In this document: piece by piece, positions 14,051 through 58,300 of the stretch
How the letters are laid out: every line of letters begins with the position of its first letter
Position numbering within the stretch: position 1 is the first letter of the stretch
From: Hyphochytrium catenoides
Taxonomy: Eukaryota; Protista; Hyphochytriomycota
DNA length: 64,000 nucleotides
Assembly (NCBI GenBank): GCA_900088475.1
Contig: FLMG01003914.1
Span: forward strand, 1-64,000
Reading direction: 5' to 3'
Notes under the pieces: generated by a model
Told to the model about the DNA's origin: nothing
Seen by the model: only the letters and a program-made list of their open reading frames with translations
The model's database searches: none
Translations under genes and position numbers: made by a program

Positions 14051-14623
14051 ATGAAAGCGGAAGTGATGACGTTTCTCGAGCATGTGTAGGTAGTGAATCC
14101 GAAGGAGGAGAAATGTCGGGAAAAAAGAAAGATCACGGAAAGGAGTGATGAGAAAGAAGGCAGCAGACTGTTGAAAACAGAGATAATAAGACCAGGCGGT
14201 GAATGTTCTAATACAAGAGAGTGGTCGCGTAGTATGTCGGGCTCTCTGTCTCTATCTCTCTTCTTCTGTATGTTGTCTTTCTCTCTGTCTCTCTCTTTTC
14301 TTGTGTCTCCCTTCTTTTTGCTATTTTCTGGTCTCCTCTGGACCAACAACGGTTTGGCTCCTGACTTGGCTGCAGTATCACAACAACCTTGGTTCCCTCT
14401 GATCACTTATTATTTAGCCACCTCCTCAAGAGAACAACAGCTACTACCGCAGCTGTCGCGTTCCTCCAAGTTCTCTTTATAACTCTTCTGCTCTCTATCT
14501 TCTCATTGTCAGAAGCACTCTCTCCTCTCCCTGATCTGATCACATAGAGCTTTAATTTGAGGTAGAATCAAGTAGGTAGTAAGGGGAATAGGGGCGTTGC
14601 GTCCCGAACCAGCGTCTTCTTTC

Positions 14624-15922
14624 ATGATGACGTTGATCAAGCTTGACGGACGAGACGACGATAGAATAAGCGTCAGAAAGGGAAGAGCTACCACTAGCTG
14701 TCGGAGGCCTCGGTCTTCCTTGGGAATTTTGCTCTTGCTTGCGTTTTCTCTCTTCTCTCTGGACCTCCTCATCAAGAGCGGAGAGGCCGCTCTTTCCTTC
14801 CGACGAGGTCCACCGACAAAGCGCTTGAAGCAGCCCCCCGCATTGGAGGAGGAACGTACTGAATATTCGAGGAGGAAAGCACCTGCTGCTGTCGCTATGT
14901 TAAAGCTTCGAACAGGAGAAGTTTCCATAGGATCACTAAAAAAGGGAGAGCAGTTTACAGCCATTGAAAGGCATGATCTTGATAACAGTCGAAACAAGGC
15001 TATAGAGGCTCTTGAATTGTCAGAAAACAAAATGAGCGAAACCCTAGAGCCGAAGAGTGTTAAAGAGTTGAAGGCACGGAAAGAGATAGCCAACAGAGCA
15101 AGAAGAGCCATCCAGGAATACCAGAACGCCGCGATTGCGCTACAAAGGCTTGCTGATGATCTGCCACTCTCGCAGAAGAAGGAGACTGTCACCAGCCATG
15201 CAAATAAGGCTGCTAAAGATGCTGCAGGATGGATGGCTAAGATAGAAGCGCATGAGCTTCAGATCTCGAGATTGAGCTCCGAGAACTTCCTTGAAGATGT
15301 ATGGAAACGTTTTAACGGTAAAGCGCATGCGGCCATTGAGGCGTTGAAGACTGCAGAAGATAGAACGGGTGGACAGGATCTGGGTCAAATGCGGGAGGAG
15401 GAGCTAATTGCATTGGACGAGGCATTCAACAAAGCTGGAAGCAGACTCGAAGAATATGAGGAGGCTGCAAATACTTTAGAAGACCTCAGCGATCTGCTAC
15501 CCTTGCAGCAGAAGGAGAATGCCAAACCTCATGTCACCGCGGCCATGAAGAACATTGAATTATGGAAGGCTAAGACCAAGGCGGACAGTAGTCAGATTAT
15601 ATGGTCTATCGCTTTGAACAGACTGGATGACCTTACGCACGCGCGGATAGAGGCGGAAGATGCCCTATATCCTTTGGTTCGGGAGGAGGAGGACGGCCAA
15701 CGCGTCGTACCGTTGCAGAGTATGCAGTCGCTTAAGGAGAGGATGGAGACGGTCAAGAAAGCAGTGGGTGCAGTAAGAAGATACGAACAGGCTGCACAGA
15801 GGCTTCTTGAAGTTGCCCCTCGGTTGCCTCCAGAGAAGATGGAGATAGCGAAGGTCAAAGCCGACGTGGCCTTTAGGAAGATCCCAGAATGGAGGAATCT
15901 GATAGCTGAAGCCCTTGTTTGA
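14624..15922 (+). CDS. Intronless hypothetical protein: N-terminal hydrophobic segment plus three ~110-aa alpha-helical repeats
   Basis: 1.3-kb open frame (first ATG 14624). Hydrophobic segment LGILLLLAFSLFSLDLLI. Repeats: AIEAL..EYQNAAIALQRLADDLP..W / AIEAL..EYEEAANTLEDLSDLLP..W / AEDAL..RYEQAAQRLLEVAPRLP..W. Confidence 0.8.
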   Translation: MMTLIKLDGRDDDRISVRKGRATTSCRRPRSSLGILLLLAFSLFSLDLLIKSGEAALSFRRGPPTKRLKQPPALEEERTEYSRRKAPAAVAMLKLRTGEVSIGSLKKGEQFTAIERHDLDNSRNKAIEALELSENKMSETLEPKSVKELKARKEIANRARRAIQEYQNAAIALQRLADDLPLSQKKETVTSHANKAAKDAAGWMAKIEAHELQISRLSSENFLEDVWKRFNGKAHAAIEALKTAEDRTGGQDLGQMREEELIALDEAFNKAGSRLEEYEEAANTLEDLSDLLPLQQKENAKPHVTAAMKNIELWKAKTKADSSQIIWSIALNRLDDLTHARIEAEDALYPLVREEEDGQRVVPLQSMQSLKERMETVKKAVGAVRRYEQAAQRLLEVAPRLPPEKMEIAKVKADVAFRKIPEWRNLIAEALV

Positions 15923-17143: not shown

Positions 17144-18368
17144 TCAAACATCGCTGTGCGCTTGCGCTTTCACCACTGCCTGATCTCCTCTCAGTGCCAG
17201 TACTTGGTAAAGTTCCCCTTTGGCCCGATGATAGGCGGAGTCAAGAGCCTCAACTACATCATCAGGTAGCGGACCCTTCTCGAGGTCAGATAAGTTCTGC
17301 TCAAGCTGCCTCGCGCTACTGGCACCGATGATAATGGCATCGCCGTACTCTTTCTTAAGCATCGAATGGTGTGATACCCATCGAAGCGCACACTCTATCT
17401 CGGTCAAGTCGTGTTTGTTACAGGCAGCACGAATGATATCCAGGGCGTCAAAGGTAGCATCGTTCCAGTAGCGTGCATGATAGAGCTTTCCCTGATTCCT
17501 ATTGGGGTCAAACCGAGAGCCCTCTTCGAAGTCCTTGATATCACGGTTGTACCGACCTGTTAAAAGACCGCCAGCCAGGGGCTGGAACGCGTACCACGAG
17601 ATGCCATAGTGACGCAGACAAGGTGCCAGTTCGCCCTCAGCGGCCCGGTGAAGGACATTGTAGACTCCTTGGTAGACGCCAGGTTTGATCCAGTCATTCT
17701 TTTTACAGAGTTCGCACATTTTGGCCACTTCCCAAGCCATAAAGTTGCTGATGCCAAACCTTGTGAAGTATCCCTCCTTGTGCAGTCTGTCTACCTCCGC
17801 CAGAGTGGTCTCCAAGGGTGTGCTGCGATCGGGACCATGGAGGTAGAACATGTCAATCTTGTCCGTCTGAAGCGCCTTCAGGCTATTCATAAGACCTCGT
17901 CGTACATCTTCCGCTCTAAAGGAATACTCCTCCTTGGTTAGCCAGCCTAACGACTTGCCCGCCGTAGGGTACAGCTTCGTCTGCATGACCAGACTGAACT
18001 TTTGCCAGCCAAGCTTGCCCAGGTACTCTTCGCTTGATCCATCACCGTATACTCGCGCGGAGTCAATTTCGGTGTGGGCATGGCGTTGGAAGACGTCAAG
18101 GATTGCTTTGATGTCCTGTTCATCATCAGATACGCGGATACCTTCTGCCCCTGTGATCATACCCGAGACAGATTCGGCGACGGAGAGAGTAAGAGGGCGC
18201 GCCTAGCAAGAATGATGGCAGCAGCGGTAGTCACCATGGAAAGAAGCATCCTGTCTCGTTAGGGCAACAGAGCGAGACGATTTCTTTATATTTTTTGATG
18301 GGAAACTCGCCTTCTCTCCCAATAGTCATACTTCCAAAGACGATCTTGAGGTTTGTCTTCGGCGTCAT
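17144..18368 (-). CDS. Aldo-keto reductase, AKR7 / aflatoxin B1 aldehyde reductase-like, fungal type; 2 exons; apparent +1 frameshift near the C-terminus
   Basis: Exon 1 18368-18311 (MTPKTNLKIVFGSMTIGRE-G), GC-AG intron 18310-18151, exon 2 from 18150. Catalytic tetrad motifs IDSARVY, TKLYP and FYLHGPD are present, plus FGISNFMAWEV, YQGVYN, FQPLAGG, IIIGASSARQLEQNL and GPLPDDVVEALD. The family-typical ending KYWH* (stop 17191-17193) is one base out of frame; as assembled the ORF runs to 17144. Confidence 0.92.
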
Positions 18369-20047: not shown

Positions 20048-23000
20048 ATGGAAGACTCATCTGACAAGAGTGATGGTACCGTCATATATCGCGTCACCCT
20101 ACCAGAAAAAGGGAAAGTACTTCATCGACGATCTCTCGAGCTTGAGAACAGACAGCTTCTCAATGACAGAGACTGGCTGTCCAGAGTCCCCGGCGGTAAG
20201 GAGCAAGTCCTTTCTCCCGTTTCTTTTGGTCCTATTTGTTTTATTTGTTGCATGCAGCTCTGCTTGTCATTGCCTCTTCCGATCTGGTATGTCTGACCTC
20301 GTTCTCTCTCCTCAGGGCTCTTTTATGCCTTACTCTCAACTGGCACTGCAGCCACCATCCTGGGAGGAATGTTTCTCTATTACTTGTGCGTTCTTCTCTT
20401 TGCGGAGCTACTTTACACCTGCGAAAAGGACAGGTATGTGCTCATGGTTAGCCTTCAGCTTCTACTAAGGATGTGTATCTGCTCGGCTCAAGATGGATAC
20501 TGTGGCCTAACAATTGGGGATCCCTTGCAGTTCATCAGGTTATAGCTTTTTAGACAGCTTTCGCCTGAGCATTCAGAGCTTTGCCACCATTGGTAAGGCA
20601 CAAAGTTTAGCATTGTCAATCATAAAACTACGATTCATCGCGCGCTCTTGTCCCATGAGTTTTCCATAATCTACGAACCACTCCTCTCTAATCGCAATCC
20701 TTGCCCATCCACCCACTGCGATGATGTTCCCCTCATAGGCTCCTGTCTATACCTACCACTTTTCGCTTCTGGACTTCCAATCGTCCTCTCCCTCCATCCC
20801 TTTGAGTGACTCTGATTCTTGCTATCTAAGCGATCACATGGTGATCTCTGTCCCTGCATTGCTCTTCGTGGTTCTAGGCTTTGGATATTTGTATCCCACG
20901 AACATGTGCAGCAACTTTGTGATCATGGGAGGGGTAGTGGTACAAATTCTGTTGGTTTCCTTCGTCCTGGGCATCATCTTCGCCAAGGTCACGCGTCCCG
21001 AGGCGCACATAGAGTTCAGCTCGGTAAGTACGGGAAGGTAGACGTTTTGCTCTGAGCGCTGAAGATAGACTGCCAAGAGAAGAAGATAGATAGTGCTACA
21101 TGCGGAAAGCGTCAATTGACCAAGAGGAGGATCCGGGCACTTTGTAGGTCGTTGGTCCCTCAAGAGTCAAGAGTAAAAGAGGGAACTTATTAGTAAAGTG
21201 AGGGTGCCAGATGTCATTCATTTTGAGCCGAACGCTGTTACAAATAGCTTTGCACAGTCCTTATCCATCTGTCTCTCTCTTTCAGGTGATGGCTCTCGGT
21301 CTTGTGGACAGCAGACCTCAGCTGAGCTGTCGGCTGGTCTGCACTTTCCCTTCGAGAAAGGTGGCCTTCGGAGAAATCCTTCATCTCAACTGCATGGCGA
21401 TTCTCTATAGACTGGAGGTGAGGCAATGGATGTAGTGTCTCAACTTAGTTCCAATATCTCTCTATACGCAATCTATGCGTTGTCGACTTTCGGGCTGTGG
21501 TTCATGTTAACGATTACTCCTTACTCGAACTGCAGAAAGATGATCTTGAGATGCCAGTAGTGAAGGAGTATCGGCTGGAGTTGGAGGAGGATAACTTCAC
21601 TAGCTTCAGGTGCGCCCTACGAAGTGCCCCATTCTCGTACCATTTCTTGGCGTTTGGCTTCCATCCTTAAACCTGAATCACGCCGCAGTTTTGGTACATC
21701 TTGCTCTTGAATCTACTGTCTTTGCCAAAACAAGTGTTCGGCGGTCCATGGTCATCTAAGCTAAGCTGAGCTGATTCCAGGTTTGCTCTTACTCTATCCC
21801 ACATCATACGGAGGACGTCTCCCTTCTATAAAATGAGTCAAGAGGTGAGAGAGTAAGCAGTGGGCCCATGCTCATTCAGTCGCTTGCGGTCCACCGCGTC
21901 GTGTCCAATTCTATGTACCTCTCCTTTGGGCATGTTTTCCGGGCAGTGTGAACCTAGGCAAAGGCTTCCAAGTACTTCCGGGATTGCGGCTAAGCATATC
22001 TTTCTAGGAGTTTTTTGCCCAAGACGCGGTTATAGAGGTGTTCGCCTCTGGAATTGATACCGCCTCTCAGAAAGCCGTAAACATCAAGACGACTTACTCC
22101 ATTGGAGATGTGCGCTGGGGAAAGGCATTTGAGCGAATGGTGAATGAGACAATTCTTATCAGTACTTGTCCGTCCACTCTTCATCTCAAGTGTACCTAAC
22201 TTTCATACAACTATACACCTTCGGCATCTTCCTGTTACTCGATGCTGCCTCGAGCTCCGCAGAACTCTCCTCCGCTAACGACAATGACTTCTCGTCTTTT
22301 AGCTCAGTCTAATACTCCGCTGTCGTGCCTATGACCTGCACGTTCTTCTCCTTCAATCACTAGGTCACATTGCAAAAGGACAGGGCTGAGATTGTGCAGG
22401 ACTTTGACTTATTAGACGCTCTGAAAGATGCACCGCTGTCCCCGGGTGCGTCGCCTCCCTCGGTTGTCATAGAACGAAGGTAAGGAGGTTGAGGCTCCGC
22501 TTAGCATAAATGCAAAGAGAGCTAGCTCCTGTTGTGCCTAAAAGGAGGAATGTCAGTCTCTCGCCTCTCTATCTCCTCCCTAGCGAATCTCCTCTTTAGG
22601 AACTTAGAATCACTTTGAAGAGTTTTGACTTCTACCTCGGCTGCACTTTGACTCAACCTCTCGTTGCGCTGTGCCACTAGCTTTCCCAATCTCAGGCCTG
22701 CTCTTCCTCATTGGAAAAGCGACAGCGCTCTAGGCCATCTTGAATATAGGTGGGACCAACAGTTGCACGAAGGGCATTGAAAGCTTGCTCAGTCCGGGGC
22801 CATGTCTTCTTCCGGGTCTTTGTTGTTTGAAGTCCATGTTCCCCAATGCAACTCTACAGATGATGATGCAGTGGTTCCCCTATCTCTCCCTCTGATGGAT
22901 CTTTATGAGACTCTATGTCCTTGGCCTTTGCCCTATAAAATGCCTCTGCGAGGTCGATGGCCTACCGCACGAATGTGCACTGGTCTCCGCCAGACTGGCC

Positions 23001-25463
23001 CTTACTGTTCACTTTGCCATTGACATGCTAATGGAGTTGAACGTCTACCAACTAACCTGTTCTCCACACCAGTGCAATGTCAACGCCGATTCGCAAGCCT
23101 GAATCTCCTCTAACTCTTTCCACTCGAGTCGGTTATTCTACCTTCGAACCAGTAAGAGAGTGTCCAGAGGAGAACGGAAGCTTGAAGAATGACGAACAAG
23201 AGACAGCTGCCTCAAGCCCGTCGCAAGAACCCCTTAACCTGCAACTGGGTGAGGAAGAAGAGCATAAAGAAAGTGCGAAAGAAGCAAGAAAGAAGAGGGT
23301 TCTACGCCGCATCCGCCATCCTTTCTTGCTGCTCTCAACGGGAGTCGGGGTAAGATGTGAAGCGACGGAAAATCCACTTAGCGCTGCTAGTCTGAGAGAG
23401 CAAGCACTTTAATTCTTTCTCAAATATCCCCCATAGCGTCCATCCTGCAGGTCCTTTCGGGTCCTCTTAGCTTATCCCACTGTTGCTCTTTCCCACTCTA
23501 CCGTAGGAGCGCGTCGAGGGCCGCCCATACCTCTGGTATACACGGGTTCAGCTCAAGAACAAACGGTTTCTGTCACGGACACGATTCTACTACTGGCTCC
23601 TCTCTCTTCGCTTCTACCAGCACCTCCTGGCAATGACCCTGCTCATCCTCTTTGTCATTTTCATCTTCGGACTCCTCTTTTACGCACAGGTTTGAGCAAG
23701 ACCTTTATTAAAGCCACTATCTGCGCTAATCCTCTCTTTCTTCTTCTCTATCGACATTTTTCGCCTGCTTGGCGGGTCTATAGCCTGAGTCGGTGACAGC
23801 GTATGAGATCTTACAGCAGAATTTGACCCGCTTCTGGCGGTGTGTTTTCATGAGCCTTCAAGTCATGTCGACAATAGGGTGCGCATTCAGACTCTCCCAT
23901 TATGTCATTTAGCGTGACGTTACTCAGGTTCTGCGATGTCTTAGGATGTTGATCCACCCCTGACAACCACTTCCTCCTGCCCGATTAACCATATCACTCT
24001 ATATTCATTTTTCTTTTGGACTGATCGCAGAGACAACTTTATCTCATCTCTATCTCAACCTCACACTCGCGGATCTTGTCTTCCTTTCGGTCATCGATAG
24101 AGGGCTCCCGTGTGCCTCTTAACTTGTCCACATACAACGTATTTACTCGTGCTCTGACTCTGCTCTCATCTCATTTATCACTCCCTTATCACTAGATATG
24201 GGGCAATGTATTCTGAGACAAACTGGGGTAACTTCCTCATCGCCATGGAGACGATGTCTGGGCTTTTCACGACTGCTATTGTGACAGGTAAGACACATGG
24301 GAAGGCCGAATTGGTCTCCGTCAAGGCTAGAAGAGAGCGATCGGCAGGCAGCTTTGCATAGTGACTGACTGCCTTTTCCGTCCATGTGTCCCCATTGTCT
24401 GGCAACCAGGCCTAACCTGGAGCAGTGCCTCTACTCCGAATGCTCGCCTGAGGTGGAGCAATCAGGTGGCTCTCCTAGAGGGCAAGAAGGGAGAGCGATT
24501 TCTTGCTTTCCGCTGCATGAACCTAAGACGACGGGGTGGGCTCACCCATTGCTCCTTCAGGTACTCCCTTAATAAGGAAGATTGAACTGCTCTGCGGCAC
24601 CGGTCGTGTCGCCTTCTCACTCTATTGACCTTTATGTGGTCAGGGTTGGCGTTTCTAGAGATGCGTCGTCATGTGCCTCCCATTATTGTCTCACTTTTAG
24701 CTGAGCTCCAGTGTTGGACCTCTGCAACAGCTCCGCAATCAAGACTTCTGTCTCTTTTTCTGCTCATGAGTTTGTCCTCTCTCTGTCGCGTCTTCCTCAC
24801 CTCTTACTTCCCTCTTAGAGTCTGTATCGTCACCGAGAAGGGTAACCTGGGACAGCGTGAGCTGGAGCTAGAGCGGTCAGAATTCGAAAGCTTCGCTACC
24901 CCACTTGTCCTTCTGCATCGAATTAACCGCAAGAGTCCTCTGTCCCGACTGGACCTTGAAGAGCTAACACGACTTAGAGATGGAGGTGAGCGAAGAGGCA
25001 ATATAGACCCAAGTTTAAGAAGCGATTGAGGTTGGGAAGAGTTCCTTGCAGCACCCGCGAGGAGCGGCAACTAAATTGGTCAAGGGAAGGATATTAAGGA
25101 AGGAGGGATGTGTGGAGAAAAGATGGGACATGGAAGAGATAACTCATTTACATTAGATCCTAACCGCCTCTCTCGCTCCTTCTGCCTTCTCCCTCTTTCT
25201 TCATCTTCTGCATGGCCCGTCCTGTCATCTTACATTCTCTCCGCGTAGCATTCCTGATGCGAGTCCTGTTCACTGCTTTTGACTCCATCTACAACGACAA
25301 TGTCTATGAAGTGCATACGTACCGGTTGGAGGACATCATGATGGGATCCTGCTTCGTCCCTTGCGCGCATCTGAAGTCAAGTGGCTTAGAGGTAGATATG
25401 GACAAGTTTGATCCGCTGCCAGACAAGGAGTGTACCTCCCATGACAGAATAAGAGTTGTATAG
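20048..25463 (+). CDS. Inward-rectifier K+ channel (Kir) with two complete Kir units in tandem (about 16 exons)
   Basis: Unit 1: TM1 LFYALL..YYLCVLLFAELLY, pore SFRLSIQSFATIG|FGYLYP, TM2 ..VLGIIFAKVTRPEAHIEFSS, cytoplasmic domain ..LSHIIRRTSPFY..IEVFASGIDTASQKAVNIKTTYSIGDVRWGKAF. Unit 2: FYYWLLSLRFYQHLLAMTLLILFVIFIFGLLFY, VFMSLQVMSTIG|YGAMYS, NARLRWSNQVAL..LAFRCMNLR, LLHRINRKSPL, VLFTAFDSIYNDNVYEVHTYRLEDIMMGSCF..VDMDKFD. An in-frame TAA precedes ATG 20048; stop TAG ends at 25463. Confidence 0.85.
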
Positions 25464-33218: not shown

Positions 33219-35624
33219 TCACAGTTCCATAGGGTGCTTAATAGGATTGAAGGGTACCTTTGGAACTTGAAGGAGAGTGACAAGAGTGTCCTCCGTGTTT
33301 CCCCCTACGCTGGCGTCCTGGTAGAAGGTGGGCCGGATCTGACTATAGACATTGTAGGTGTCCATGGCTGCAGCAATCTCCAGATCCCAATGCACCTTTT
33401 TCCGTATACTGCTATCGAGTGCCCGGATGAGAAACTCCAAATACCTTGGAGATATTATAACCACAGCGTGATGACCAAGCATGTTATAGACCCGGGCTAT
33501 ATTTGGAACAGTTGTGAACTCATAGGCCACCCCGAGGGAATGCCAGTAATGGTCCTCCAACCTCCGGTACTTTGAAAGACCAAGATAGACGGCATCAGCA
33601 TCTGCCGGAACATTGATTACATTGCGGTAGTGCCAAGCAGTGAGCGATGCGTCATCCTCTAGCAAAAGCAACGGTACAGATGAAGCTTCGTCTAGCACAG
33701 TTCGATGTTGTCTAAGCATGTTGACCATACTCCGAGCGCCTGAGGTAGGATAATCTCCTACCTCACCAATTTTGAGAGTGAAATGTGATATGCCCACCAT
33801 CTGCAACTGACTGGTGATATGAGTAAGTCGATACTGCTGAGTTGGATTGTGCAGCACGGCAACGTGCATAAGTCTGGTGAGGTTGAGAGACGATACAGCC
33901 ATGGATCTGCTCTGCGAAGGTGTACTCACATCCGATGTGTCCCAATTCAGGAGGGAGACCCGCATCGGATTTATTCGTAGCAGGGTCTGGCTTGGACCAC
34001 AAATTTTGTGCAATGAAGGCACGCTAAGGTCTATACCATCCCATTGGGGAGACCTATCCACCGCTCGAAGAGTTATGTGGAACCGATGGAGACACATCAA
34101 GGTGGCTTGGTTCTGGATCGCACCATCCTCCAGTCGGAAGAAGCCTCTAAGTGGATGAGGTTCACATGCCGTTGACAGTATCAGCGTCCTCGCCTGGTTT
34201 TCTCCTGCTTGTTCCTGGGCCTGTAAGCACTTTCCTGTCTCTAGATGTTGAAGGACACCACCAGGTAGCCATCGAAACCATGAAAAGGAATCCCTTGCGG
34301 AGCACATAGGACTTAGAATGACAAGAGCATTGTCCTGGACGCTGTCTGGGAGTATACATTCTGAGCCATCTAACACCTGCAAGAGAAAGGCCCCTTCCAG
34401 GTCCAGAGAAGACAGTGGATTCCCTTTGCGATAATCGGCTTGGGGAAGCTTTGGGCTTCCTCGTTCAGCAAACGTACCCCTCTCGATGGTAGGGGAAGCT
34501 TCGGGAATGGACCCATTTCCGCAGTGAGATCTACCAGAACTATCAAGGGGATTAGCCTTATTCAGGTGAACGATGTAGTAAGCCCTAAGTTCCTCGTCTG
34601 ACTCTGCTTCTCCGTATTCAGGTCTCAAAATCTTGTTAAAAAGGGGTTGACCCTCTCTCCAAATCCGTCCCTTCGTCTGAGACTCTGGATTATCAAGCCA
34701 CTCGTGGATAACGTGGTTGTGTGTAAGCATGTCGCAGACGCCGCTGATGTAGGTGCCGGACTGCCTGTTGGGCTGAATCCGCCTATACGCATCCTCGATG
34801 AGGTGCTTCATATCTGTCAGGTGAGAAATAAGGGCTTCCCGTCGACCGCCAAACATACCGACAGCGTAGAGCCTGTTGAAAATGCTTCTAGGTGGGATCA
34901 CTTCCTCAAAGCAGCCTTTCCAATTATGCTCTACCCAGTCCATCTTAGGCTTCGCTTCGTATGAGTAGAACAAGTCCTCTTGCCGAGTGCGGACCCATGA
35001 GAACGGGTTCTTCTGGTACACCACATCCGATATGTCTGTTAAGAAAGCATACTCTATGCTGGGGTTTCGCATAAGATAATGCAGGAACCCTAGTATTCTG
35101 TACTCCGTAGGCCAAAGAGCATCTAGCGATTCAGCAGAACAGAAGCCCGAGTGGATTAGATCTTGTCTATCAACTTTAACGAATTGAACATTGGGGCTCT
35201 GAAAGCTTGTCACGAAGTGGTCTGACAGGTCATCGTATAGCACAATGCCAAACAGCCCTTGTGCATGTACTGACTCATACCAACCCTGCATGTAGGTGTA
35301 TTGATCTTTGTAGCTTGGTAGTGTAAGGCGTTGAGGGTCTGCTTTATGAGTAAAAAATCCTGCCATGACAATGTCATGACGAGCGGCCATCGATGGAGTA
35401 GAAAGCCCGCCATCCACAGGGCGGTCCGCTCTTGCTCTTTCCTGGAAGTGTCCGTTCTGCAAGGAAGCGCACACAGCCGTGCCTGGTGGTCCACATGATA
35501 AATTTGTTGACCCCGGGTAGGAGAGCTCAAGGTGGTGCTTCCCTGGAGAAGATAGAGATTCTCCGCCACAGCGTCCGGCGGCCACTACGGCGAGACTAAT
35601 AAGATAGTACAGCGGAGCCATCAT
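33219..35624 (-). CDS. Intronless 801-aa secretory-pathway protein: glycosyltransferase-like domain + ricin-B lectin + GT25-like domain
   Basis: Signal peptide/anchor MMAPLYYLISLAVVAAG. Domain 1: FFTHKADPQR..GIVLYDDLSDHFV..YAFLTDISDVVYQKNPF. Ricin-like: ECILP..LSPMC..FRWLPGGVLQHLETGKCLQ..GAIQNQATLMCL. Domain 3: LLLLEDDA..VPADADAVYLGLS..RVYNMLGHHAVVIISPRY..HWDLEIA..PTFYQD. Confidence 0.8.
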   Translation of the reverse strand: MMAPLYYLISLAVVAAGRCGGESLSSPGKHHLELSYPGSTNLSCGPPGTAVCASLQNGHFQERARADRPVDGGLSTPSMAARHDIVMAGFFTHKADPQRLTLPSYKDQYTYMQGWYESVHAQGLFGIVLYDDLSDHFVTSFQSPNVQFVKVDRQDLIHSGFCSAESLDALWPTEYRILGFLHYLMRNPSIEYAFLTDISDVVYQKNPFSWVRTRQEDLFYSYEAKPKMDWVEHNWKGCFEEVIPPRSIFNRLYAVGMFGGRREALISHLTDMKHLIEDAYRRIQPNRQSGTYISGVCDMLTHNHVIHEWLDNPESQTKGRIWREGQPLFNKILRPEYGEAESDEELRAYYIVHLNKANPLDSSGRSHCGNGSIPEASPTIERGTFAERGSPKLPQADYRKGNPLSSLDLEGAFLLQVLDGSECILPDSVQDNALVILSPMCSARDSFSWFRWLPGGVLQHLETGKCLQAQEQAGENQARTLILSTACEPHPLRGFFRLEDGAIQNQATLMCLHRFHITLRAVDRSPQWDGIDLSVPSLHKICGPSQTLLRINPMRVSLLNWDTSDVSTPSQSRSMAVSSLNLTRLMHVAVLHNPTQQYRLTHITSQLQMVGISHFTLKIGEVGDYPTSGARSMVNMLRQHRTVLDEASSVPLLLLEDDASLTAWHYRNVINVPADADAVYLGLSKYRRLEDHYWHSLGVAYEFTTVPNIARVYNMLGHHAVVIISPRYLEFLIRALDSSIRKKVHWDLEIAAAMDTYNVYSQIRPTFYQDASVGGNTEDTLVTLLQVPKVPFNPIKHPMEL

Positions 35625-39380: not shown

Positions 39381-42300
39381 TTATGCGGTGATCTTCTGCC
39401 TCTTCCTGCTGGCCTCTTTAGATCTGGAGTCCTGATCTTCAACGTACACGTTCTGCTCGCTTGCTAGCTGTGTCTTCAAGAATTTGAGGCCTGCGATTGG
39501 AGGCGAGATGACGAGTGTAGGAAAGTCCACAGTAGGAGAACAATTAGGAAGGGACGTACACAGAGACAGGGCAAACAGAGCGCTCAAACAGAGAGTCTCG
39601 ATGGAGAAGCATGGGAGATAAACGCTGTCATCACAACACGTTATTCTCAATCTTTACCTGCTATATTATACCCTATGGTGTCCTGCTGTTGTCTGAGCTT
39701 CTCCCTAGTGAGCTTCCAGAGTGAAGTCAGGACGGGCAGCAGCGAGTTGTCACCGACGATCTGCAAAAGCAGGGACATTTAAATAAAGTCAACAGCACCG
39801 TGCCTCTGGATGAAGAGACAGACCTCATGATAACGTCTAAGGAGTACTTAGATATAAGCAGTAGCAGCTTTCCAATTTGGAAGACAAAGAACACTGGCAG
39901 GAGAGTGTATCAAGTTCTCTAGCCACAATTATTCTGAAAGAGTANNNNNNNNNNNNNNNNNNNNNNNNNNNNNNNNNNNNNNNNNNNNNNNNNNNNNNNN
40001 NNNNNNNNNNNNNNNNNNNNNNNNNNNNNNNCACTATGGCCAGTGTCACTTTAGCGCAGACTTCTACTCCCGTCACATTTTCACTCTGAAGTAGCTGGAG
40101 AAGAAGAGAGCAGATGGCTTGCACGGCGCTATAGGGGAGGAGAAGGAGAGCTTCCTCAATGTCTTGTGCTCGGATCTGGCGCAAAGTGTAGAGGATATAC
40201 TCTGACGGACTATGCCCAAGTAGTAGTACATTGGGAACGAAGCCTTCTCCCGCTTGGTCTGTTCCATGATCTTCTCTGGTCCCATCCTCGCCGGTGCTAC
40301 CCTTCTTCTGAGCTGAATAAGCTTGGAAGCGCTTTTGCTCATCCACAGCCATCTGTATCGCCTCCAACAGCCTCTCACCAGCCTTCAAAGTCTCTAGGCT
40401 CTGGAGGCTGGCTTTAGCAGACTCTCCTTCTTCTCCCGCAAGTTTTCCCTTCTCTGGAGCTGCGGCGTCCTTCTCAAACATCTCTTCCAGCTTCCGCTCT
40501 CTCTCTTCCTCAATGAAGACAAGCTCTCCATCAGGGCTTCTCTCCCAAATGCGCAGAGAGCGATCGTGAGAAGAGGAAACCACGTAGTCTCCTAACTCGC
40601 TGACGGCTAAGCTCCAGACCTCTCCCTTGTGGCCGTCAAGTTTCAAGATCTAGCAACACATAGCCATCAAACAACAGGGGTGTTGGTGAAAGAGGAACAG
40701 GCAAAGCGGTGTGAGAGCCGGCGTAACGGTAGACTCGGAGATATGACCCCTTGCCGCAGCACAAGGTCGGTCTGGTAAATAGACTTTCCCTCTACAGATT
40801 GGGTTTACTGGGAGCGAAGAGAAGAGAGATGAGCTGAAAGATAAAGGCTTGCAGTGAGAGAGAGCGATAAAGAATGGATCTCTGCTTTCTTTGATACCTC
40901 GTCATAGGTATCCCCATCCCAGTACTTGACGGAGTGATCCTTAGATGCTGTGAAGAAGTGATGGGTCCCTGGTACGAATGAGATGGCCATGACACTGTCG
41001 TCATGGGCAAAGATTGACTTATGGCAATCTCCAAAGTCCAAGCCCCTGGTGGAGGCTAACGTGAGATTTGAACGAAAGGGACAACCAAAGAGACATAACA
41101 GGCTATTCTTTGAGACGATGTGGGAATTAGAGAACAAATGACAGAGCAGAATGAGGGAAAAGCGTTAGGTAAGCCGTGGGAGGAGTGAGGATGCTATGTG
41201 AGCACTGTCTCATAAAACCCTACCAAAGCTTTACATTCTTGTCCGCTGAAGCTGTGGCCAACAGCTGGTTATCAGAGGAGATGGCCATGGCCATGACAGG
41301 CAGCTTGTGACCGTAAAGAGAAAGGAAGAATTTCAGAGAGTCTTCATAGAAGACCTTAACCGTGCAGTCTAGGAGAGAGACCGCCAGAAGAAGTGGAGAA
41401 GAGGATGAGGAGGTGGGAGAGGAATGGCTGTAGCAAACGCTAAGAACGTCATCCGCCATCTTGAGGGTCCGGGTGTGTACAAGGCCCAAAACCCTGAAGA
41501 GAGAGAAAATATGCAGAGTGGGATTATCAGGGCAGCGATGTACCAAGGCTTGGGAGAACGGAAGAAACAAGAGAGAAGAACACGACGATGGACGAGAGGA
41601 CGGGCGTGTCTGCATAGGTGCTCCAGCGGGGATAGACGTAAGGAGTTCGCACACAAAGATCCTCTACCTCTTGTTTGTCTGCTCGTCCTCTATCATCTCA
41701 AAGTCCCAGAACTTTACGTCTTGGTCTGCGCTCCCTGAAGCTATGCCGCGGCCGTCAGGGCGTTTAGCTATACTCCAAACTGCTCCACTGTGAGCGTCAT
41801 AAGAGGCAGAGAGCTCCCCAGAACCGAGGTCAAACACCTGGGGCGAAATGGCGAAATGGGCGCTCTCAACAACTGAATGGCCAATGGGCGATTAAAGAGA
41901 AATAAAGGTCTGCAGCACAAGGTAGGGTCATCAGTAGAGGCTGCACACGACAACTCAAACTTTAGGTGAACCCAGCAAGGAAGAAAGGAAGATGAAGGCT
42001 TGGCTACAGTGAATTGACGTCTTCCACCGCAAGCGCGATCGCTGGTTGAAAGCCCACTATTAGTTCACCTGTATCAGCCCGTTCTTGGTGCCAACGAGTA
42101 CATGTCGGTCTCCTGGTACAAAGACGGCAACCAGAGCGAGAGAGGTTGCAAGGGTGCGGACACACTGCTGATTGTGGGCGTTCCAAAGCTTCACCTGTAA
42201 GCCAGATAACGAGTTAGGGATGATGAGAAGAAAGACCGAAAGATTCTTAGCCAGTGCACCAGACTCTATACTCTGATCTCCTCAACAATCCGTATATAGT

Positions 42301-55311: not shown

Positions 55312-58300
55312 ATGGAGACTGTGCCGCCCAGCGTAGTAGGCGGTACACGGCCCAAAAGGAAGCCTAAGCCAATCTCACGCTACATCGAGGACGAGGAGCT
55401 CTATGATAGCGGAATACTTCTCTTCTCTCCTTTCCCCAGTACTATTCTACGGCGCAAGGACAAAGCACGAGCAGTGCCTACATCAGTATCCTCTCCCTCT
55501 GTTTTTTTTTATGAACCCCCGCCCCCGGAAGAACTATCAAAAGATTCTCAAGGACAGATCTGCGGCAGGTTAGACAATGTCGAAGAGGAAGATGAAGCTT
55601 ATCGATCTAAGTCTTGGCAATCTAACAAAAGACAGAGGCAAGAAATGCAGAGCCAGCAGGCCAGCAGTAGTCAACTAGCTCAGCCACTAGGGAAGAAGAA
55701 AAGCAGTAGGCTCTGCAAAATCCCTAAGTGTCCCAAGTATGCGAAAGGCCAGGGTTTTTGCTTGGCGCATGGTGGAATTTTGAAGCGCTGTGCCGTCCAA
55801 GGCTGTGAGAAGTATCCCAAGCTACAACGCTTGTGTCGCGCTCATTGGTCGGAGCTGGTGCGTTCCAAGAGCCACCTTGATGCTGCCTGTAAGAATAAGG
55901 AGGAAGAGAAGAACGTTGCAATGTTACCTGGCACACCAGGGGTTGGGGAGGAGAGCAGAGGAGAAAAGCTGCAGGTCACAAGCGTTGCGACACAAGGACG
56001 AGGGGAGAAGAAGAAGACAGGAGAGGTTAGCAAGGATAAGAAGAAAGGCAAGAAAGAAAAACAGAAAAAGATGTGCTCCGAGCCTGGAGGATGCAGCAAC
56101 CAAGCACACACCAGTGGACTCTGCAAGAGGCATTTTCGCGCTCTTCAAAATGCTTTCGATGTTGAGCAAGCCTCTGCAACAAGCAAGCCACCCCGACTGA
56201 TCACTCATGGCAATGAGGCAACCATTGAAGAAGGATTCACAGGAAAGCATGCTGACAAAGCAGGCAGTTTCTTTCACTCAGAGCAAGAAGGAAGAGCTGC
56301 TGCGGCTGACGAAAAGGGAAGAGAGAAGAAGCCTTCTTTGGACAAAGAGAGCCGTCAGTGCTCTGCCCCTGACTGCCAGGAGCTGGCTGTAATTGGCAGA
56401 GGACTTTGCCGTGCCCACGGCGGAGGCGCCAGGGTCAGAAGGAGGTGCACAGCTCCTGGAGGCTGCGGCAGAGAAGCACAGCGGGATAAGCTTTGTCTTT
56501 ATCATTTCAATCTTCTAAGAAACGGGAGGGAGACAGATCAGTGCTCACCCACTGTTGGAACGTCCACCGGTTCCAGCCAAGACAGTGCTCTGAAGGAGGA
56601 CTATTCAGAGCACGATATCCAAGGAGACCACACCGAAGTGGCAGCCGTTGAGCTCGAGACGAGAGAAGACCCTATAGAACGTAAGGTGGAGAGTGAGAAA
56701 GGCCCTGAAGAACCTAGCCAACAGCTCATAGTGACTATGGGGGCGGAAGGCACAGCTTTCACTAAGGAGGAAGTGACAATGGGAGGGTCTGCTGCGACGG
56801 GAAGAACCAACGGTGAGGAGCAGGTGGAGAAAACTGCCAAAGTGGACCAGGAGTCACGGACAGAAAGCGGTGGAGGCGAGGATGAGAGAGTGGAAGATGA
56901 GAGAAAGGAAGAGGCTCGGTGGTGCTCAGTCCCCGGTTGCGACGACCCTCCAGAGTGCCGGGGTCTCTGTCTCGGCCATGCCAACAGGCGTAAGAAGGAC
57001 AGAGTGAAGTGCAGGGCTCTCGAAGGATGTCTGAACCAGGCACAGAAGGACGGACTCTGTAAGTCTCATCGCACCGCCCTAATCCGTGAAGCTTCTCGCG
57101 CTCTTTCTGCCACCGACGTCCTTCCTCTGATGGACGGGAGCAAAAGGACTGCAGTTAGAGGTGAAACAGAAGAGAATGAGACATTGAAGGATAAAGTTCC
57201 AGAGCAGCAGGGAGAGACATTGTCCACTGCGGCAGCCGGGAGTGAGGCACACGGAATATCGAAGCTTAAAGAAGAGAAAGCAAGCAGTGCAAAAGATAAA
57301 GACATGGAGGAACGAACGGGAGACAGACTATACATGGAGGAGGAGGGCGCCAGAGAGACAAGAGAACCGTGCTCAGTCCCTGGCTGCCTTCACCCTAGAA
57401 GCGATGGCAGTGAAGTCTGCATAAGCCACCGTCTAAGAAGTGAGAAAAGAGCTAGAAGAGGCTGTGGTGCCCCTGGAGGCTGCGAGAAGCAAGCGAAGGT
57501 AAAGGGACTGTGCATGTCACATTTTAAGCAGCAAAAGCGAGAGAAACGAGCGGCCCAGCGCCTCTCACGAAGCTCACAGCAAAAACTAGAAGCGACAGCA
57601 AACGCGAAAGAAGGCAGAGGAAAGGACGAGAGTGAGGTCANNNNNNNNNNNNNNNNNNNNNNNNNNNNNNNNNNNNNNNNNNNNNNNNNNNNNNNGCGGC
57701 AAAAAGAAGATCAAGAAGTTTTGCACCGCTCCTGAAGGGTGCAATCGGCAAGTACACAGTCAAGGGCTGTGCCAGTCTCACAAGGCGGCATTGAAGAGAC
57801 AAATAGTGCCTCCCACTAGACCGCAACAATTAGGGTTTCCAATCCAGAGAAAGAGTGACACCGTAAGAGACGAGACCAAACAGAAGCGGAAGAGAGGGAT
57901 ATGCCGGGCTCCTGGCGGTTGTGGGACATTCGCGAAAGTCAAGGGCTTTTGTCGGGCACATCACACCTTCTTCATCAAGACCCAAGGCTATCTTCCTGAG
58001 ACTACATGGCCCGCAAAAGTAAAAGGAGAGAAGGAGATGGGTCAACCAGTTCAGAGGGTCCTACCGGAGAACAAGAAAGCGATGGCAGAACAACTGGCCT
58101 GCTCAGCTCCTGGCTGCTCTGGCCAAGCTCTAGCTTCTGGGACCCTCTGCGGGCCTCACAAGAGAGGGATCAAGAAGATCAAAAGGAAATGTCAGCATCA
58201 TAACGGATGTGAGAAGCAAGCTCAAAGGCGAGGACTCTGCCTTCGGCACTTTAGAAGCTTCCAGGAAACGAGTGAGACCACTCGTCTGGGGACGGAGGAG

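Follow-up and report, generated by a model that had tools for sequence, protein, structure and literature searches.

Two divergent Kir-type potassium channel units in tandem in Hyphochytrium catenoides and a candidate intron that may join them in one polypeptide

The plus strand of the window, as we call the whole 64,000-nt stretch of Hyphochytrium catenoides DNA analyzed here, carries two Kir/KirBac-like units arranged head to tail with 593 bases between them. Judged by its sequence features, the locus encodes a pair of Kir/KirBac-type potassium channel units that are old and have diverged widely. Each is predicted to consist of TM1, a pore helix, the filter and TM2, with a beta-rich cytoplasmic domain after them. 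In the textbook view of Kir channels, a single pore is built from four separate subunits. A splice donor at the end of the upstream unit and an acceptor just before the downstream one would join the two in frame, and we put at about even the chance that they are made as a single 723-residue polypeptide upon removal of the candidate intron 22480-23072.

Two Kir-like units

Unit 1 (20048-22483, plus strand) has nine exons encoding 331 aa with the filter TIGFG, and unit 2 (23077-25463, plus strand) has seven exons encoding 391 aa with the filter TIGYG and a TAG stop. This agrees with an earlier note on this DNA, which had claimed two Kir-like units with these filters at the same place. In the exon models, which were built by hand, both reading frames are intact over 16 exons, and all 14 introns within the units are GT-AG, with lengths of 94-317 nt:

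20048-20195, plus strand: unit 1 exon 1, ATG in ACCATGG context, cytoplasmic N-terminus
20316-20433, plus strand: unit 1 exon 2, TM1
20531-20592, plus strand: unit 1 exon 3, pore helix, with T-I-G of TIGFG at the exon end (phase 1)
20878-21023, plus strand: unit 1 exon 4, filter F-G, TM2 and the start of the cytoplasmic domain (AKVTRP...), IRK and Kir2.2 matches
21286-21417, plus strand: unit 1 exon 5, cytoplasmic domain
21536-21609, plus strand: unit 1 exon 6, cytoplasmic domain
21781-21844, plus strand: unit 1 exon 7, cytoplasmic domain, IRK_C match
22008-22139, plus strand: unit 1 exon 8, cytoplasmic domain, weak donor GTGAAT (22140)
22364-22483, plus strand: unit 1 exon 9, ending with TAA (22481-22483) when unspliced, or at 22479 upon use of the linking donor
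23077-23349, plus strand: unit 2 exon 1, sole ATG of the exon, followed by an E/S/P-rich stretch of about 70 aa (linker or extension of the N-terminus) and by KKRVLRRIRHPF
23507-23689, plus strand: unit 2 exon 2, slide-helix-like segment, TM1
23784-23878, plus strand: unit 2 exon 3, pore helix, with T-I-G of TIGYG at the exon end (phase 2), Ion_trans_2 match
24196-24287, plus strand: unit 2 exon 4, filter Y-G, TM2
24410-24560, plus strand: unit 2 exon 5, cytoplasmic domain
24819-24985, plus strand: unit 2 exon 6, cytoplasmic domain, IRK_C match
25249-25463, plus strand: unit 2 exon 7, end of the cytoplasmic domain, TAG stop, aligning with unit 1 exons 8-9, KirBac3.1 match

Both units contain the K+ signature filter T-x-G-Y/F-G in a 2TM pore module. 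The TIGFG of unit 1 (20586-20592 plus 20878-20885) is flanked by two hydrophobic helices, and the TIGYG of unit 2 (23871-23878 plus 24196-24202) is likewise set between hydrophobic helices. An intron interrupts the Gly codon of TIG in each filter, in phase 1 in unit 1 and in phase 2 in unit 2. Beyond the last conserved motif the tails are short, at 17 and 12 aa in the two units. For unit 1 exon 8 the weak GTGAAT donor was picked because it preserves the alignment with unit 2; donor 22162 was rejected for this exon, as a stop follows immediately, and acceptor 22302 was rejected for exon 9, as homology with unit 2 is lost. A third Kir unit in the window was also rejected, there being no additional filter motif in any frame. 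The locus is neighbored by an intronless ORF of 801 aa.

The two units share 25% identity over 291 aa (blastp, E 2e-17) and one or two intron positions at most. They are old paralogs by this comparison, the low identity indicating that the duplication is old. Pfam and PDB comparisons were run exon by exon, and each Pfam score from these single exons is below threshold (cut-offs 22.7 bits for IRK and 22.5 bits for IRK_C), with the matches in an order collinear with the family models. In unit 1, exon 4 matches IRK at 15.2 bits (profile 100-141) as well as residues 124-155 of Kir2.2, and exon 7 matches IRK_C at 12.6 bits (profile 75-92). In unit 2, exon 3 matches Ion_trans_2 at 13.3 bits, exon 6 matches IRK_C at 18.9 bits (E 0.0012, profile 54-97) and exon 7 matches residues 241-293 of KirBac3.1 (E 0.5).

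Word-based protein searches with single exons, in which a length filter keeps proteins of 700-900 aa out of reach, returned no relatives of unit 2 exon 1, the linker exon, or of unit 1 exon 4, and the single-exon protein searches returned no transcript-derived protein either. An exhaustive search of representative proteins with unit 2 exon 7 turned up nothing except a spurious repeat protein; an exon carrying TM2 or the filter would perhaps be a better query. Two scans of metagenome contigs, one querying unit 1 exon 4 and the other unit 2 exon 2, found no relatives. In a protein atlas, one query hit weak clusters of short proteins that carry the IRK name; a second query hit nothing. A scan against Rfam produced only a sub-threshold miRNA-like match, and a scan for bacterial-type promoters and terminators yielded nothing useful.

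The spacer as a candidate intron

The sites that could link the units, and the spacer between them, are as follows:

22477-22487, plus strand: candidate linking donor AAG/GTAAGGAG, GT at 22480-22481, phase 2, overlapping the TAA stop (22481-22483)
23051-23072, plus strand: candidate linking acceptor, ACTAAC at 23051-23056, AG-free pyrimidine tract, AG at 23071-23072, phase 2
22480-23072, plus strand: spacer of 593 nt, candidate intron or intergenic region

The earlier note had reported the splice sites, the branch point and the match in phase 2, all of which we recovered with one slip corrected: the donor GT occupies 22480-22481 and the exon ends at 22479. The donor fits the consensus AAG/GTAAGG and scores 8.6 (PWM), within the top 1.2% of 3242 GT sites, with splice matrices trained on just 14 introns modelled by hand. 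No donor in the region other than 22480 keeps the frame, and the combination of donor 22446 with acceptor 23072 was rejected as out of frame. A perfect ACTAAC lies 17 nt upstream of acceptor 23072, the AG of which ends 4 nt before ATG 23077. The combination of a PWM score of at least 6.4, a CTRAY motif and an AG-free zone occurs at 13 of the 5686 AG sites in the window (0.23%), and these include several acceptors of the hand-built exon model. Joined at 22479/23073, the two units form one open frame of 723 aa that reads ...VVIER-S-A-MSTPIRK... across the junction. Only 21 bases upstream of ATG 23077 are free of stops, and the acceptor falls within them.

The spacer has a pyrimidine fraction of 0.571, compared with 0.588 in the 14 introns, and both of its flanks differ. 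At 593 nt it is 1.9 times as long as the longest of the other 14 introns and three times their mean. With eight ATGs, the 200 nt that precede ATG 23077 would make a poor long 5'UTR. The spacer also holds rival acceptors at 22583 and 22695, both lacking a branch motif. No acceptor in the spacer outscores the former by the matrix (12.5, top 0.23%), and it lies 104 nt from the linking donor; in the other introns, decoys that outrank the true acceptor are frequent. Further features are a weak donor at 22750 (score 5.8), an ATG-free stretch from about 22552 to 22801 and a TATAAA at 22934.

One chain or two genes

If the 593-nt intron (22480-23072) were spliced out in at least part of the transcripts, unit 1 with TIGFG would be tied to unit 2 with TIGYG by about 90 acidic, Ser/Pro-rich residues that are probably disordered. 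Two such 723-aa chains would assemble into a pseudo-tetrameric pore in which the filter types alternate in a fixed 2:2 arrangement, and the four cytoplasmic domains would form a gating ring. We infer use of the 22479/23073 junction, and likewise dimer assembly, K+ selectivity and gating. The earlier note had proposed a fused Kir acting as a dimer with a fixed 2:2 filter. Its units and its in-frame, statistically unusual donor/acceptor pair stand, whereas the dimer with the fixed 2:2 filter is plausible only and two-gene models stay coherent, given that neither unit lacks an ATG or a stop of its own and that a 5'UTR intron could use the same acceptor.

Two neighboring genes, whose 331- and 391-aa products would form ordinary tetramers, either homomeric or heteromeric like Kir4.1/Kir5.1, have in our estimate a little less than an even chance. 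Unit 1 would then stop at TAA 22481-22483, or five codons later (...IERSESPL, then stop) by way of an acceptor such as 22583, and unit 2 would begin at ATG 23077, on a transcript that may start at about 22560-22749 and lose a 5'UTR intron at 22750-23072. Such an arrangement follows the rule of single-unit architecture in the Kir family and accords with each unit being a complete subunit, with start and stop in natural positions and a short tail. ATG 23077 is the sole ATG of its exon and the first codon available past the upstream stop, and its place two codons past the acceptor, which has a chance expectation of about 6%, is unexpected for a purely internal exon. We also counted against fusion the outlier length of the intron, the TATAAA at 22934, the blank single-exon and metagenome searches, and the 5'UTR-intron model, whose donor at 22750 and ATG-free stretch suit acceptor 23072 too; the top-scoring acceptor at 22583 likewise favors separate genes. 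On the other hand, separate genes would need two coincidences: a consensus donor exactly on the stop codon, where a 60-nt tail is expected to contain such a donor no more than about 4% of the time, and an acceptor of the rare class that happens to match the phase of this donor and to fall within the 21 stop-free nucleotides. The acceptors at 22583 and 22695 lack a branch motif, donor 22750 is weak, and for old paralogs at 25% identity still to lie 593 nt apart on one strand calls for some constraint. These points were counted for fusion together with the intact frames, the shared phase 2, the open 723-aa frame, the intron-like pyrimidine content of the spacer and the eight upstream ATGs.

It is conceivable, though unlikely, that the locus yields both forms, with read-through and splicing producing the 723-aa chain, and termination after unit 1 plus an internal start producing single units; this probability is counted within those of the fused chain and of the separate genes. 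Production of both would account for the stop inside the donor and the ATG right behind the acceptor, and conjoined read-through genes are an established phenomenon, but it is the least economical model. A locus that makes no working channel, with at least one unit a decaying copy or an artefact of the hand-built exon models, we regard as very improbable. The sub-threshold exon-wise family scores, the failure of single-exon searches to find relatives and the one weak donor (GTGAAT, 22140) would fit decay or artefact, but all 16 exons stay in frame, the splice sites and both filters are canonical, the units align from end to end (E 2e-17) and the family matches are collinear.

Relation to known potassium channels

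The units resemble KirBac1.1, KirBac3.1 and animal Kir channels such as Kir2.2 in having two TM helices round a pore helix, a T-I-G-Y/F-G filter and a predicted beta-rich cytoplasmic domain. In our own reading the motifs following the filter and TM2 (GYGAMY..., AKVTRP...) are closer to KirBac than to animal Kir. Compared with both, the units here are very divergent, with exon-wise scores all under the family cut-offs, and they lie in a eukaryotic, intron-rich gene as two unlike units in tandem, possibly in one chain. To our knowledge, every Kir or KirBac subunit described so far has one unit and assembles into tetramers. No natural tandem Kir channels were found in the literature searched, and a search of paper supplements for IRK genes of P. 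infestans found nothing.

Engineered Kir tandem dimers (Kir4.1-Kir5.1, Kir6.2) are laboratory constructs in which the C-terminus is joined to the next N-terminus, fixing stoichiometry and arrangement. They indicate that the C- to N-terminal topology is workable in Kir channels, and we know of no other route by which a fixed Kir stoichiometry has so far been reached. The H. catenoides locus would differ from them as a natural gene, if fused. It is about as likely as not that the locus encodes two whole Kir subunits in one natural concatemer, forming a dimeric pseudo-tetramer with alternating TIGFG and TIGYG filters, within an old two-repeat Kir lineage of pseudofungi (hyphochytrids and oomycetes). 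Should the fusion be real, such a two-repeat lineage would be one not described in the searchable literature, and to this reading as a whole we give belief and doubt in equal measure. If true, it would mean that the Kir family, too, went from a tetramer to a dimer of doubles, as in K2P, TOK and TPC channels; it would provide a system from nature in which the asymmetry of filters and gating domains is hard-wired, and would bear on the origin of tandem K+ channel architectures. Separate units would make the locus an ordinary case: two highly divergent protist Kir genes in tight linkage, whose products probably form heteromers.

Outside the pore, no sequence relationship between these units and the tandem-pore K+ channels is known to us. 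The tandem-pore architecture, found in K2P, plant TPK, yeast TOK1 and viral Kpov channels, has been reviewed (PMC13715775). If fused, the units described here would be like these channels: each chain would carry two pore domains, a pore would take two chains, and filters that are not identical would sit in fixed positions. Tandem-pore repeats, however, are bare pore modules without the Kir cytoplasmic domain, whereas here each repeat would be a whole Kir subunit, and the linkage would run from cytoplasm to cytoplasm by a long linker, unlike that in tandem-pore channels. TbIRK of Trypanosoma brucei is a divergent protist channel of the Kir family with a single unit and without the signature filter (PMC5429665); in contrast, both units in H. 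catenoides retain that filter.

Two Kir-like units

The multi-exon frames at 20048-25463 were rebuilt by hand from the three-frame translation of the forward strand, and the reconstruction confirms the two Kir units with filters TIGFG and TIGYG that the earlier note had described:

20048-22483, + strand: unit 1, 9 exons, 331 aa, filter TIGFG
23077-25463, + strand: unit 2, 7 exons, 391 aa, filter TIGYG

In each unit a hydrophobic TM1 is followed by a pore helix, a canonical K+ filter and a TM2, and the cytoplasmic domain covers ~160 residues; from the filters we infer that both would be K+ selective. All 14 introns within the units are GT-AG and range from 94 to 317 nt. Introns average 189 nt and exons 136 nt at this locus; mean lengths in the published genome of Hyphochytrium catenoides are 208 bp for introns and 228 bp for exons (PMC5795050). 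In both units the filter is split by an intron in the Gly codon of T-I-G, in phase 1 in unit 1 (20592/20878) and in phase 2 in unit 2 (23878/24196), suggesting intron sliding or independent gain at one spot. The remaining intron positions are mostly unlike between the units. No third Kir unit was found elsewhere in the 64-kb window.

Single exons were used as queries against Pfam, the PDB, and protein collections. The matches are each weak, yet they fall in one family at collinear positions. Unit 1 exon 4 matches Pfam IRK (profile 100-141, 15.2 bits) and residues 124-155 of Kir2.2, and unit 1 exon 7 matches IRK_C (profile 75-92, 12.6 bits). In unit 2, exon 6 matches IRK_C (profile 54-97, 18.9 bits, E 0.0012), the pore exon is matched by Ion_trans_2, and the last exon matches residues 241-293 of KirBac3.1. 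Because of this collinearity and the alignment of the two spliced models with each other (25% identity over 291 residues, E 2e-17), we regard the units as genuine, highly divergent members of the Kir/KirBac kind, an assignment made from exon-wise matches that each score below the curated family thresholds.

A word search of protein collections with the linker exon and unit 1 exon 4 returned nothing within its range of 0.55-1.75 times the query length; the queries being 48-91 residues long, this blank is uninformative on relatives of 330-900 aa. An exhaustive protein search with the last exon of unit 2 gave a repeat-protein artefact only and, having no length limit, indicates that no protein at least ~40% identical to this exon is represented. 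Two metagenome scans gave no match. Annotated IRK genes are present in Phytophthora infestans, with five-fold induction in spores (PMC5322657). No description of a natural tandem Kir was found in the literature searched; how tandem K+ channel architectures arose is a question that a 2026 viral K2P channel paper (PMC13715775) regards as still open. A fused Kir, if true, would be a variant of a known channel kind.

Candidate splice sites between the units

The junction proposed in the earlier note, phase 2 at both ends, is present as splice motifs after a one-base correction. The upstream exon ends in AAG at 22479, after which the sequence reads GTAAGGAG; the donor GT lies at 22480-22481, and the donor consensus includes the TAA stop of unit 1 (22481-22483). 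At the other end, the acceptor AG occupies 23071-23072; upstream of it are ACTAAC (23051-23056) and a pyrimidine stretch free of AG, and ATG 23077 comes four bases after it. Joining them would give the frame ...VVIER-S-A-MSTPIRK..., open for 723 codons. Donor 22480 is the only frame-keeping donor in the region, and the sole 21 stop-free bases upstream of ATG 23077 contain acceptor 23072.

Site scores come from matrices built on a small, self-made training set, the 14 introns within the two units, and are indicative only. The donor scores 8.6 (top 1.2% of 3242 GT sites in the window) and the acceptor 6.4 (top 2.9% of window AG sites). A score at the level of this acceptor, together with a CTRAY motif 10-45 nt before the site and an AG-free zone, is found at 13 of 5686 AG sites (0.23%), three of which are acceptors in the hand-built models. 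Two acceptor-like sites in the spacer between the units outscore 23072, namely 22583 (12.5) and 22695 (8.7), both without a branch motif. Of the eight longer introns in the two units, five likewise contain decoys that score above the real acceptor.

Between 22695 and a weak donor at 22750 (5.8) lies a 54-nt segment (22696-22749) that would keep the frame if included between donor 22480 and acceptor 23072; formally, this could be a micro-exon of the linker, or else a piece of a unit 2 5'UTR exon.

One chain or two genes

The interpretation as a tandem Kir is partly supported; we put at even chances the proposal, drawn from sequence features, that a fused chain would be made, maybe alongside single units. 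Splicing across the spacer (593 nt, 22480-23072) is favored by the quality and phase agreement of its donor and acceptor, by the frame that donor 22480 alone keeps, and by the absence of a branch motif at rival acceptors of a type frequent as decoys in these genes' introns. The pyrimidine content of the spacer (0.571) is intron-like (introns 0.588 ± 0.094; exons ~0.50; flanks outside the locus 0.33-0.55). Eight ATGs within the 200 nt before ATG 23077 (22877-23076) would make a poor 5'UTR unless it were short or spliced. Fusion is also favored by the position of the units, old paralogs at 25% identity with almost no common intron positions and yet only 593 nt apart on one strand.

That unit 1 and unit 2 are two separate genes only has somewhat less than an even chance. 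Each is self-contained, with its own start codon (in unit 1 within ACCATGG) and a stop that falls 12-17 residues past the final conserved motif. The sole ATG in the first exon of unit 2, at 23077, stands two codons past the acceptor, as expected of a start codon; in an internal exon, this placement would be a coincidence of ~6%. As an intron, the spacer would exceed the longest of the other 14 by a factor of 1.9 and would be three times as long as their average. In a coherent model with two genes, acceptor 23072 could serve a 5'UTR intron from the weak donor at 22750, with an ATG-free stretch of ~250 nt (22552-22801) upstream; a TATAAA is present at 22934, and the donor at the stop codon could instead pair with 22583, 104 nt off, so that unit 1 would terminate in ...IERSESPL*. 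That the locus is non-functional or the model faulty is very improbable.

Predicted channel and neighboring genes

If fused, two 723-residue chains would assemble into a pseudo-tetramer, with pore loops of the TIGFG and the TIGYG type in alternating positions around the axis and four cytoplasmic domains forming a gating ring. The linker in the joined model is ~89 residues long; charged residues make up 29% of it and P/S/T/G/Q/N/E/K 66%. By analogy with engineered Kir tandem dimers, the predicted linker is of sufficient length to span to the neighboring position. Separate units could assemble with each other into heterotetramers whose stoichiometry varies, or give two distinct homotetramers.

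Upstream, a 338-aa ORF on the minus strand (17144-18160) resembles an aldo-keto reductase gene; its 5' end lies ~1.7 kb from unit 1 and it is oriented away, and the two may have a common divergent promoter region. A 441-aa open frame on the plus strand (14597-15922) is rich in Glu, Lys, and Ala and has a coiled-coil look. No gene for the exact product of an intronless 801-aa ORF on the minus strand (33219-35624), previously read as a glycosyltransferase/ricin fusion, was found in the public assemblies index. Runs of N at 39945-40031 and 57641-57695 (142 in total) are scaffold assembly gaps.
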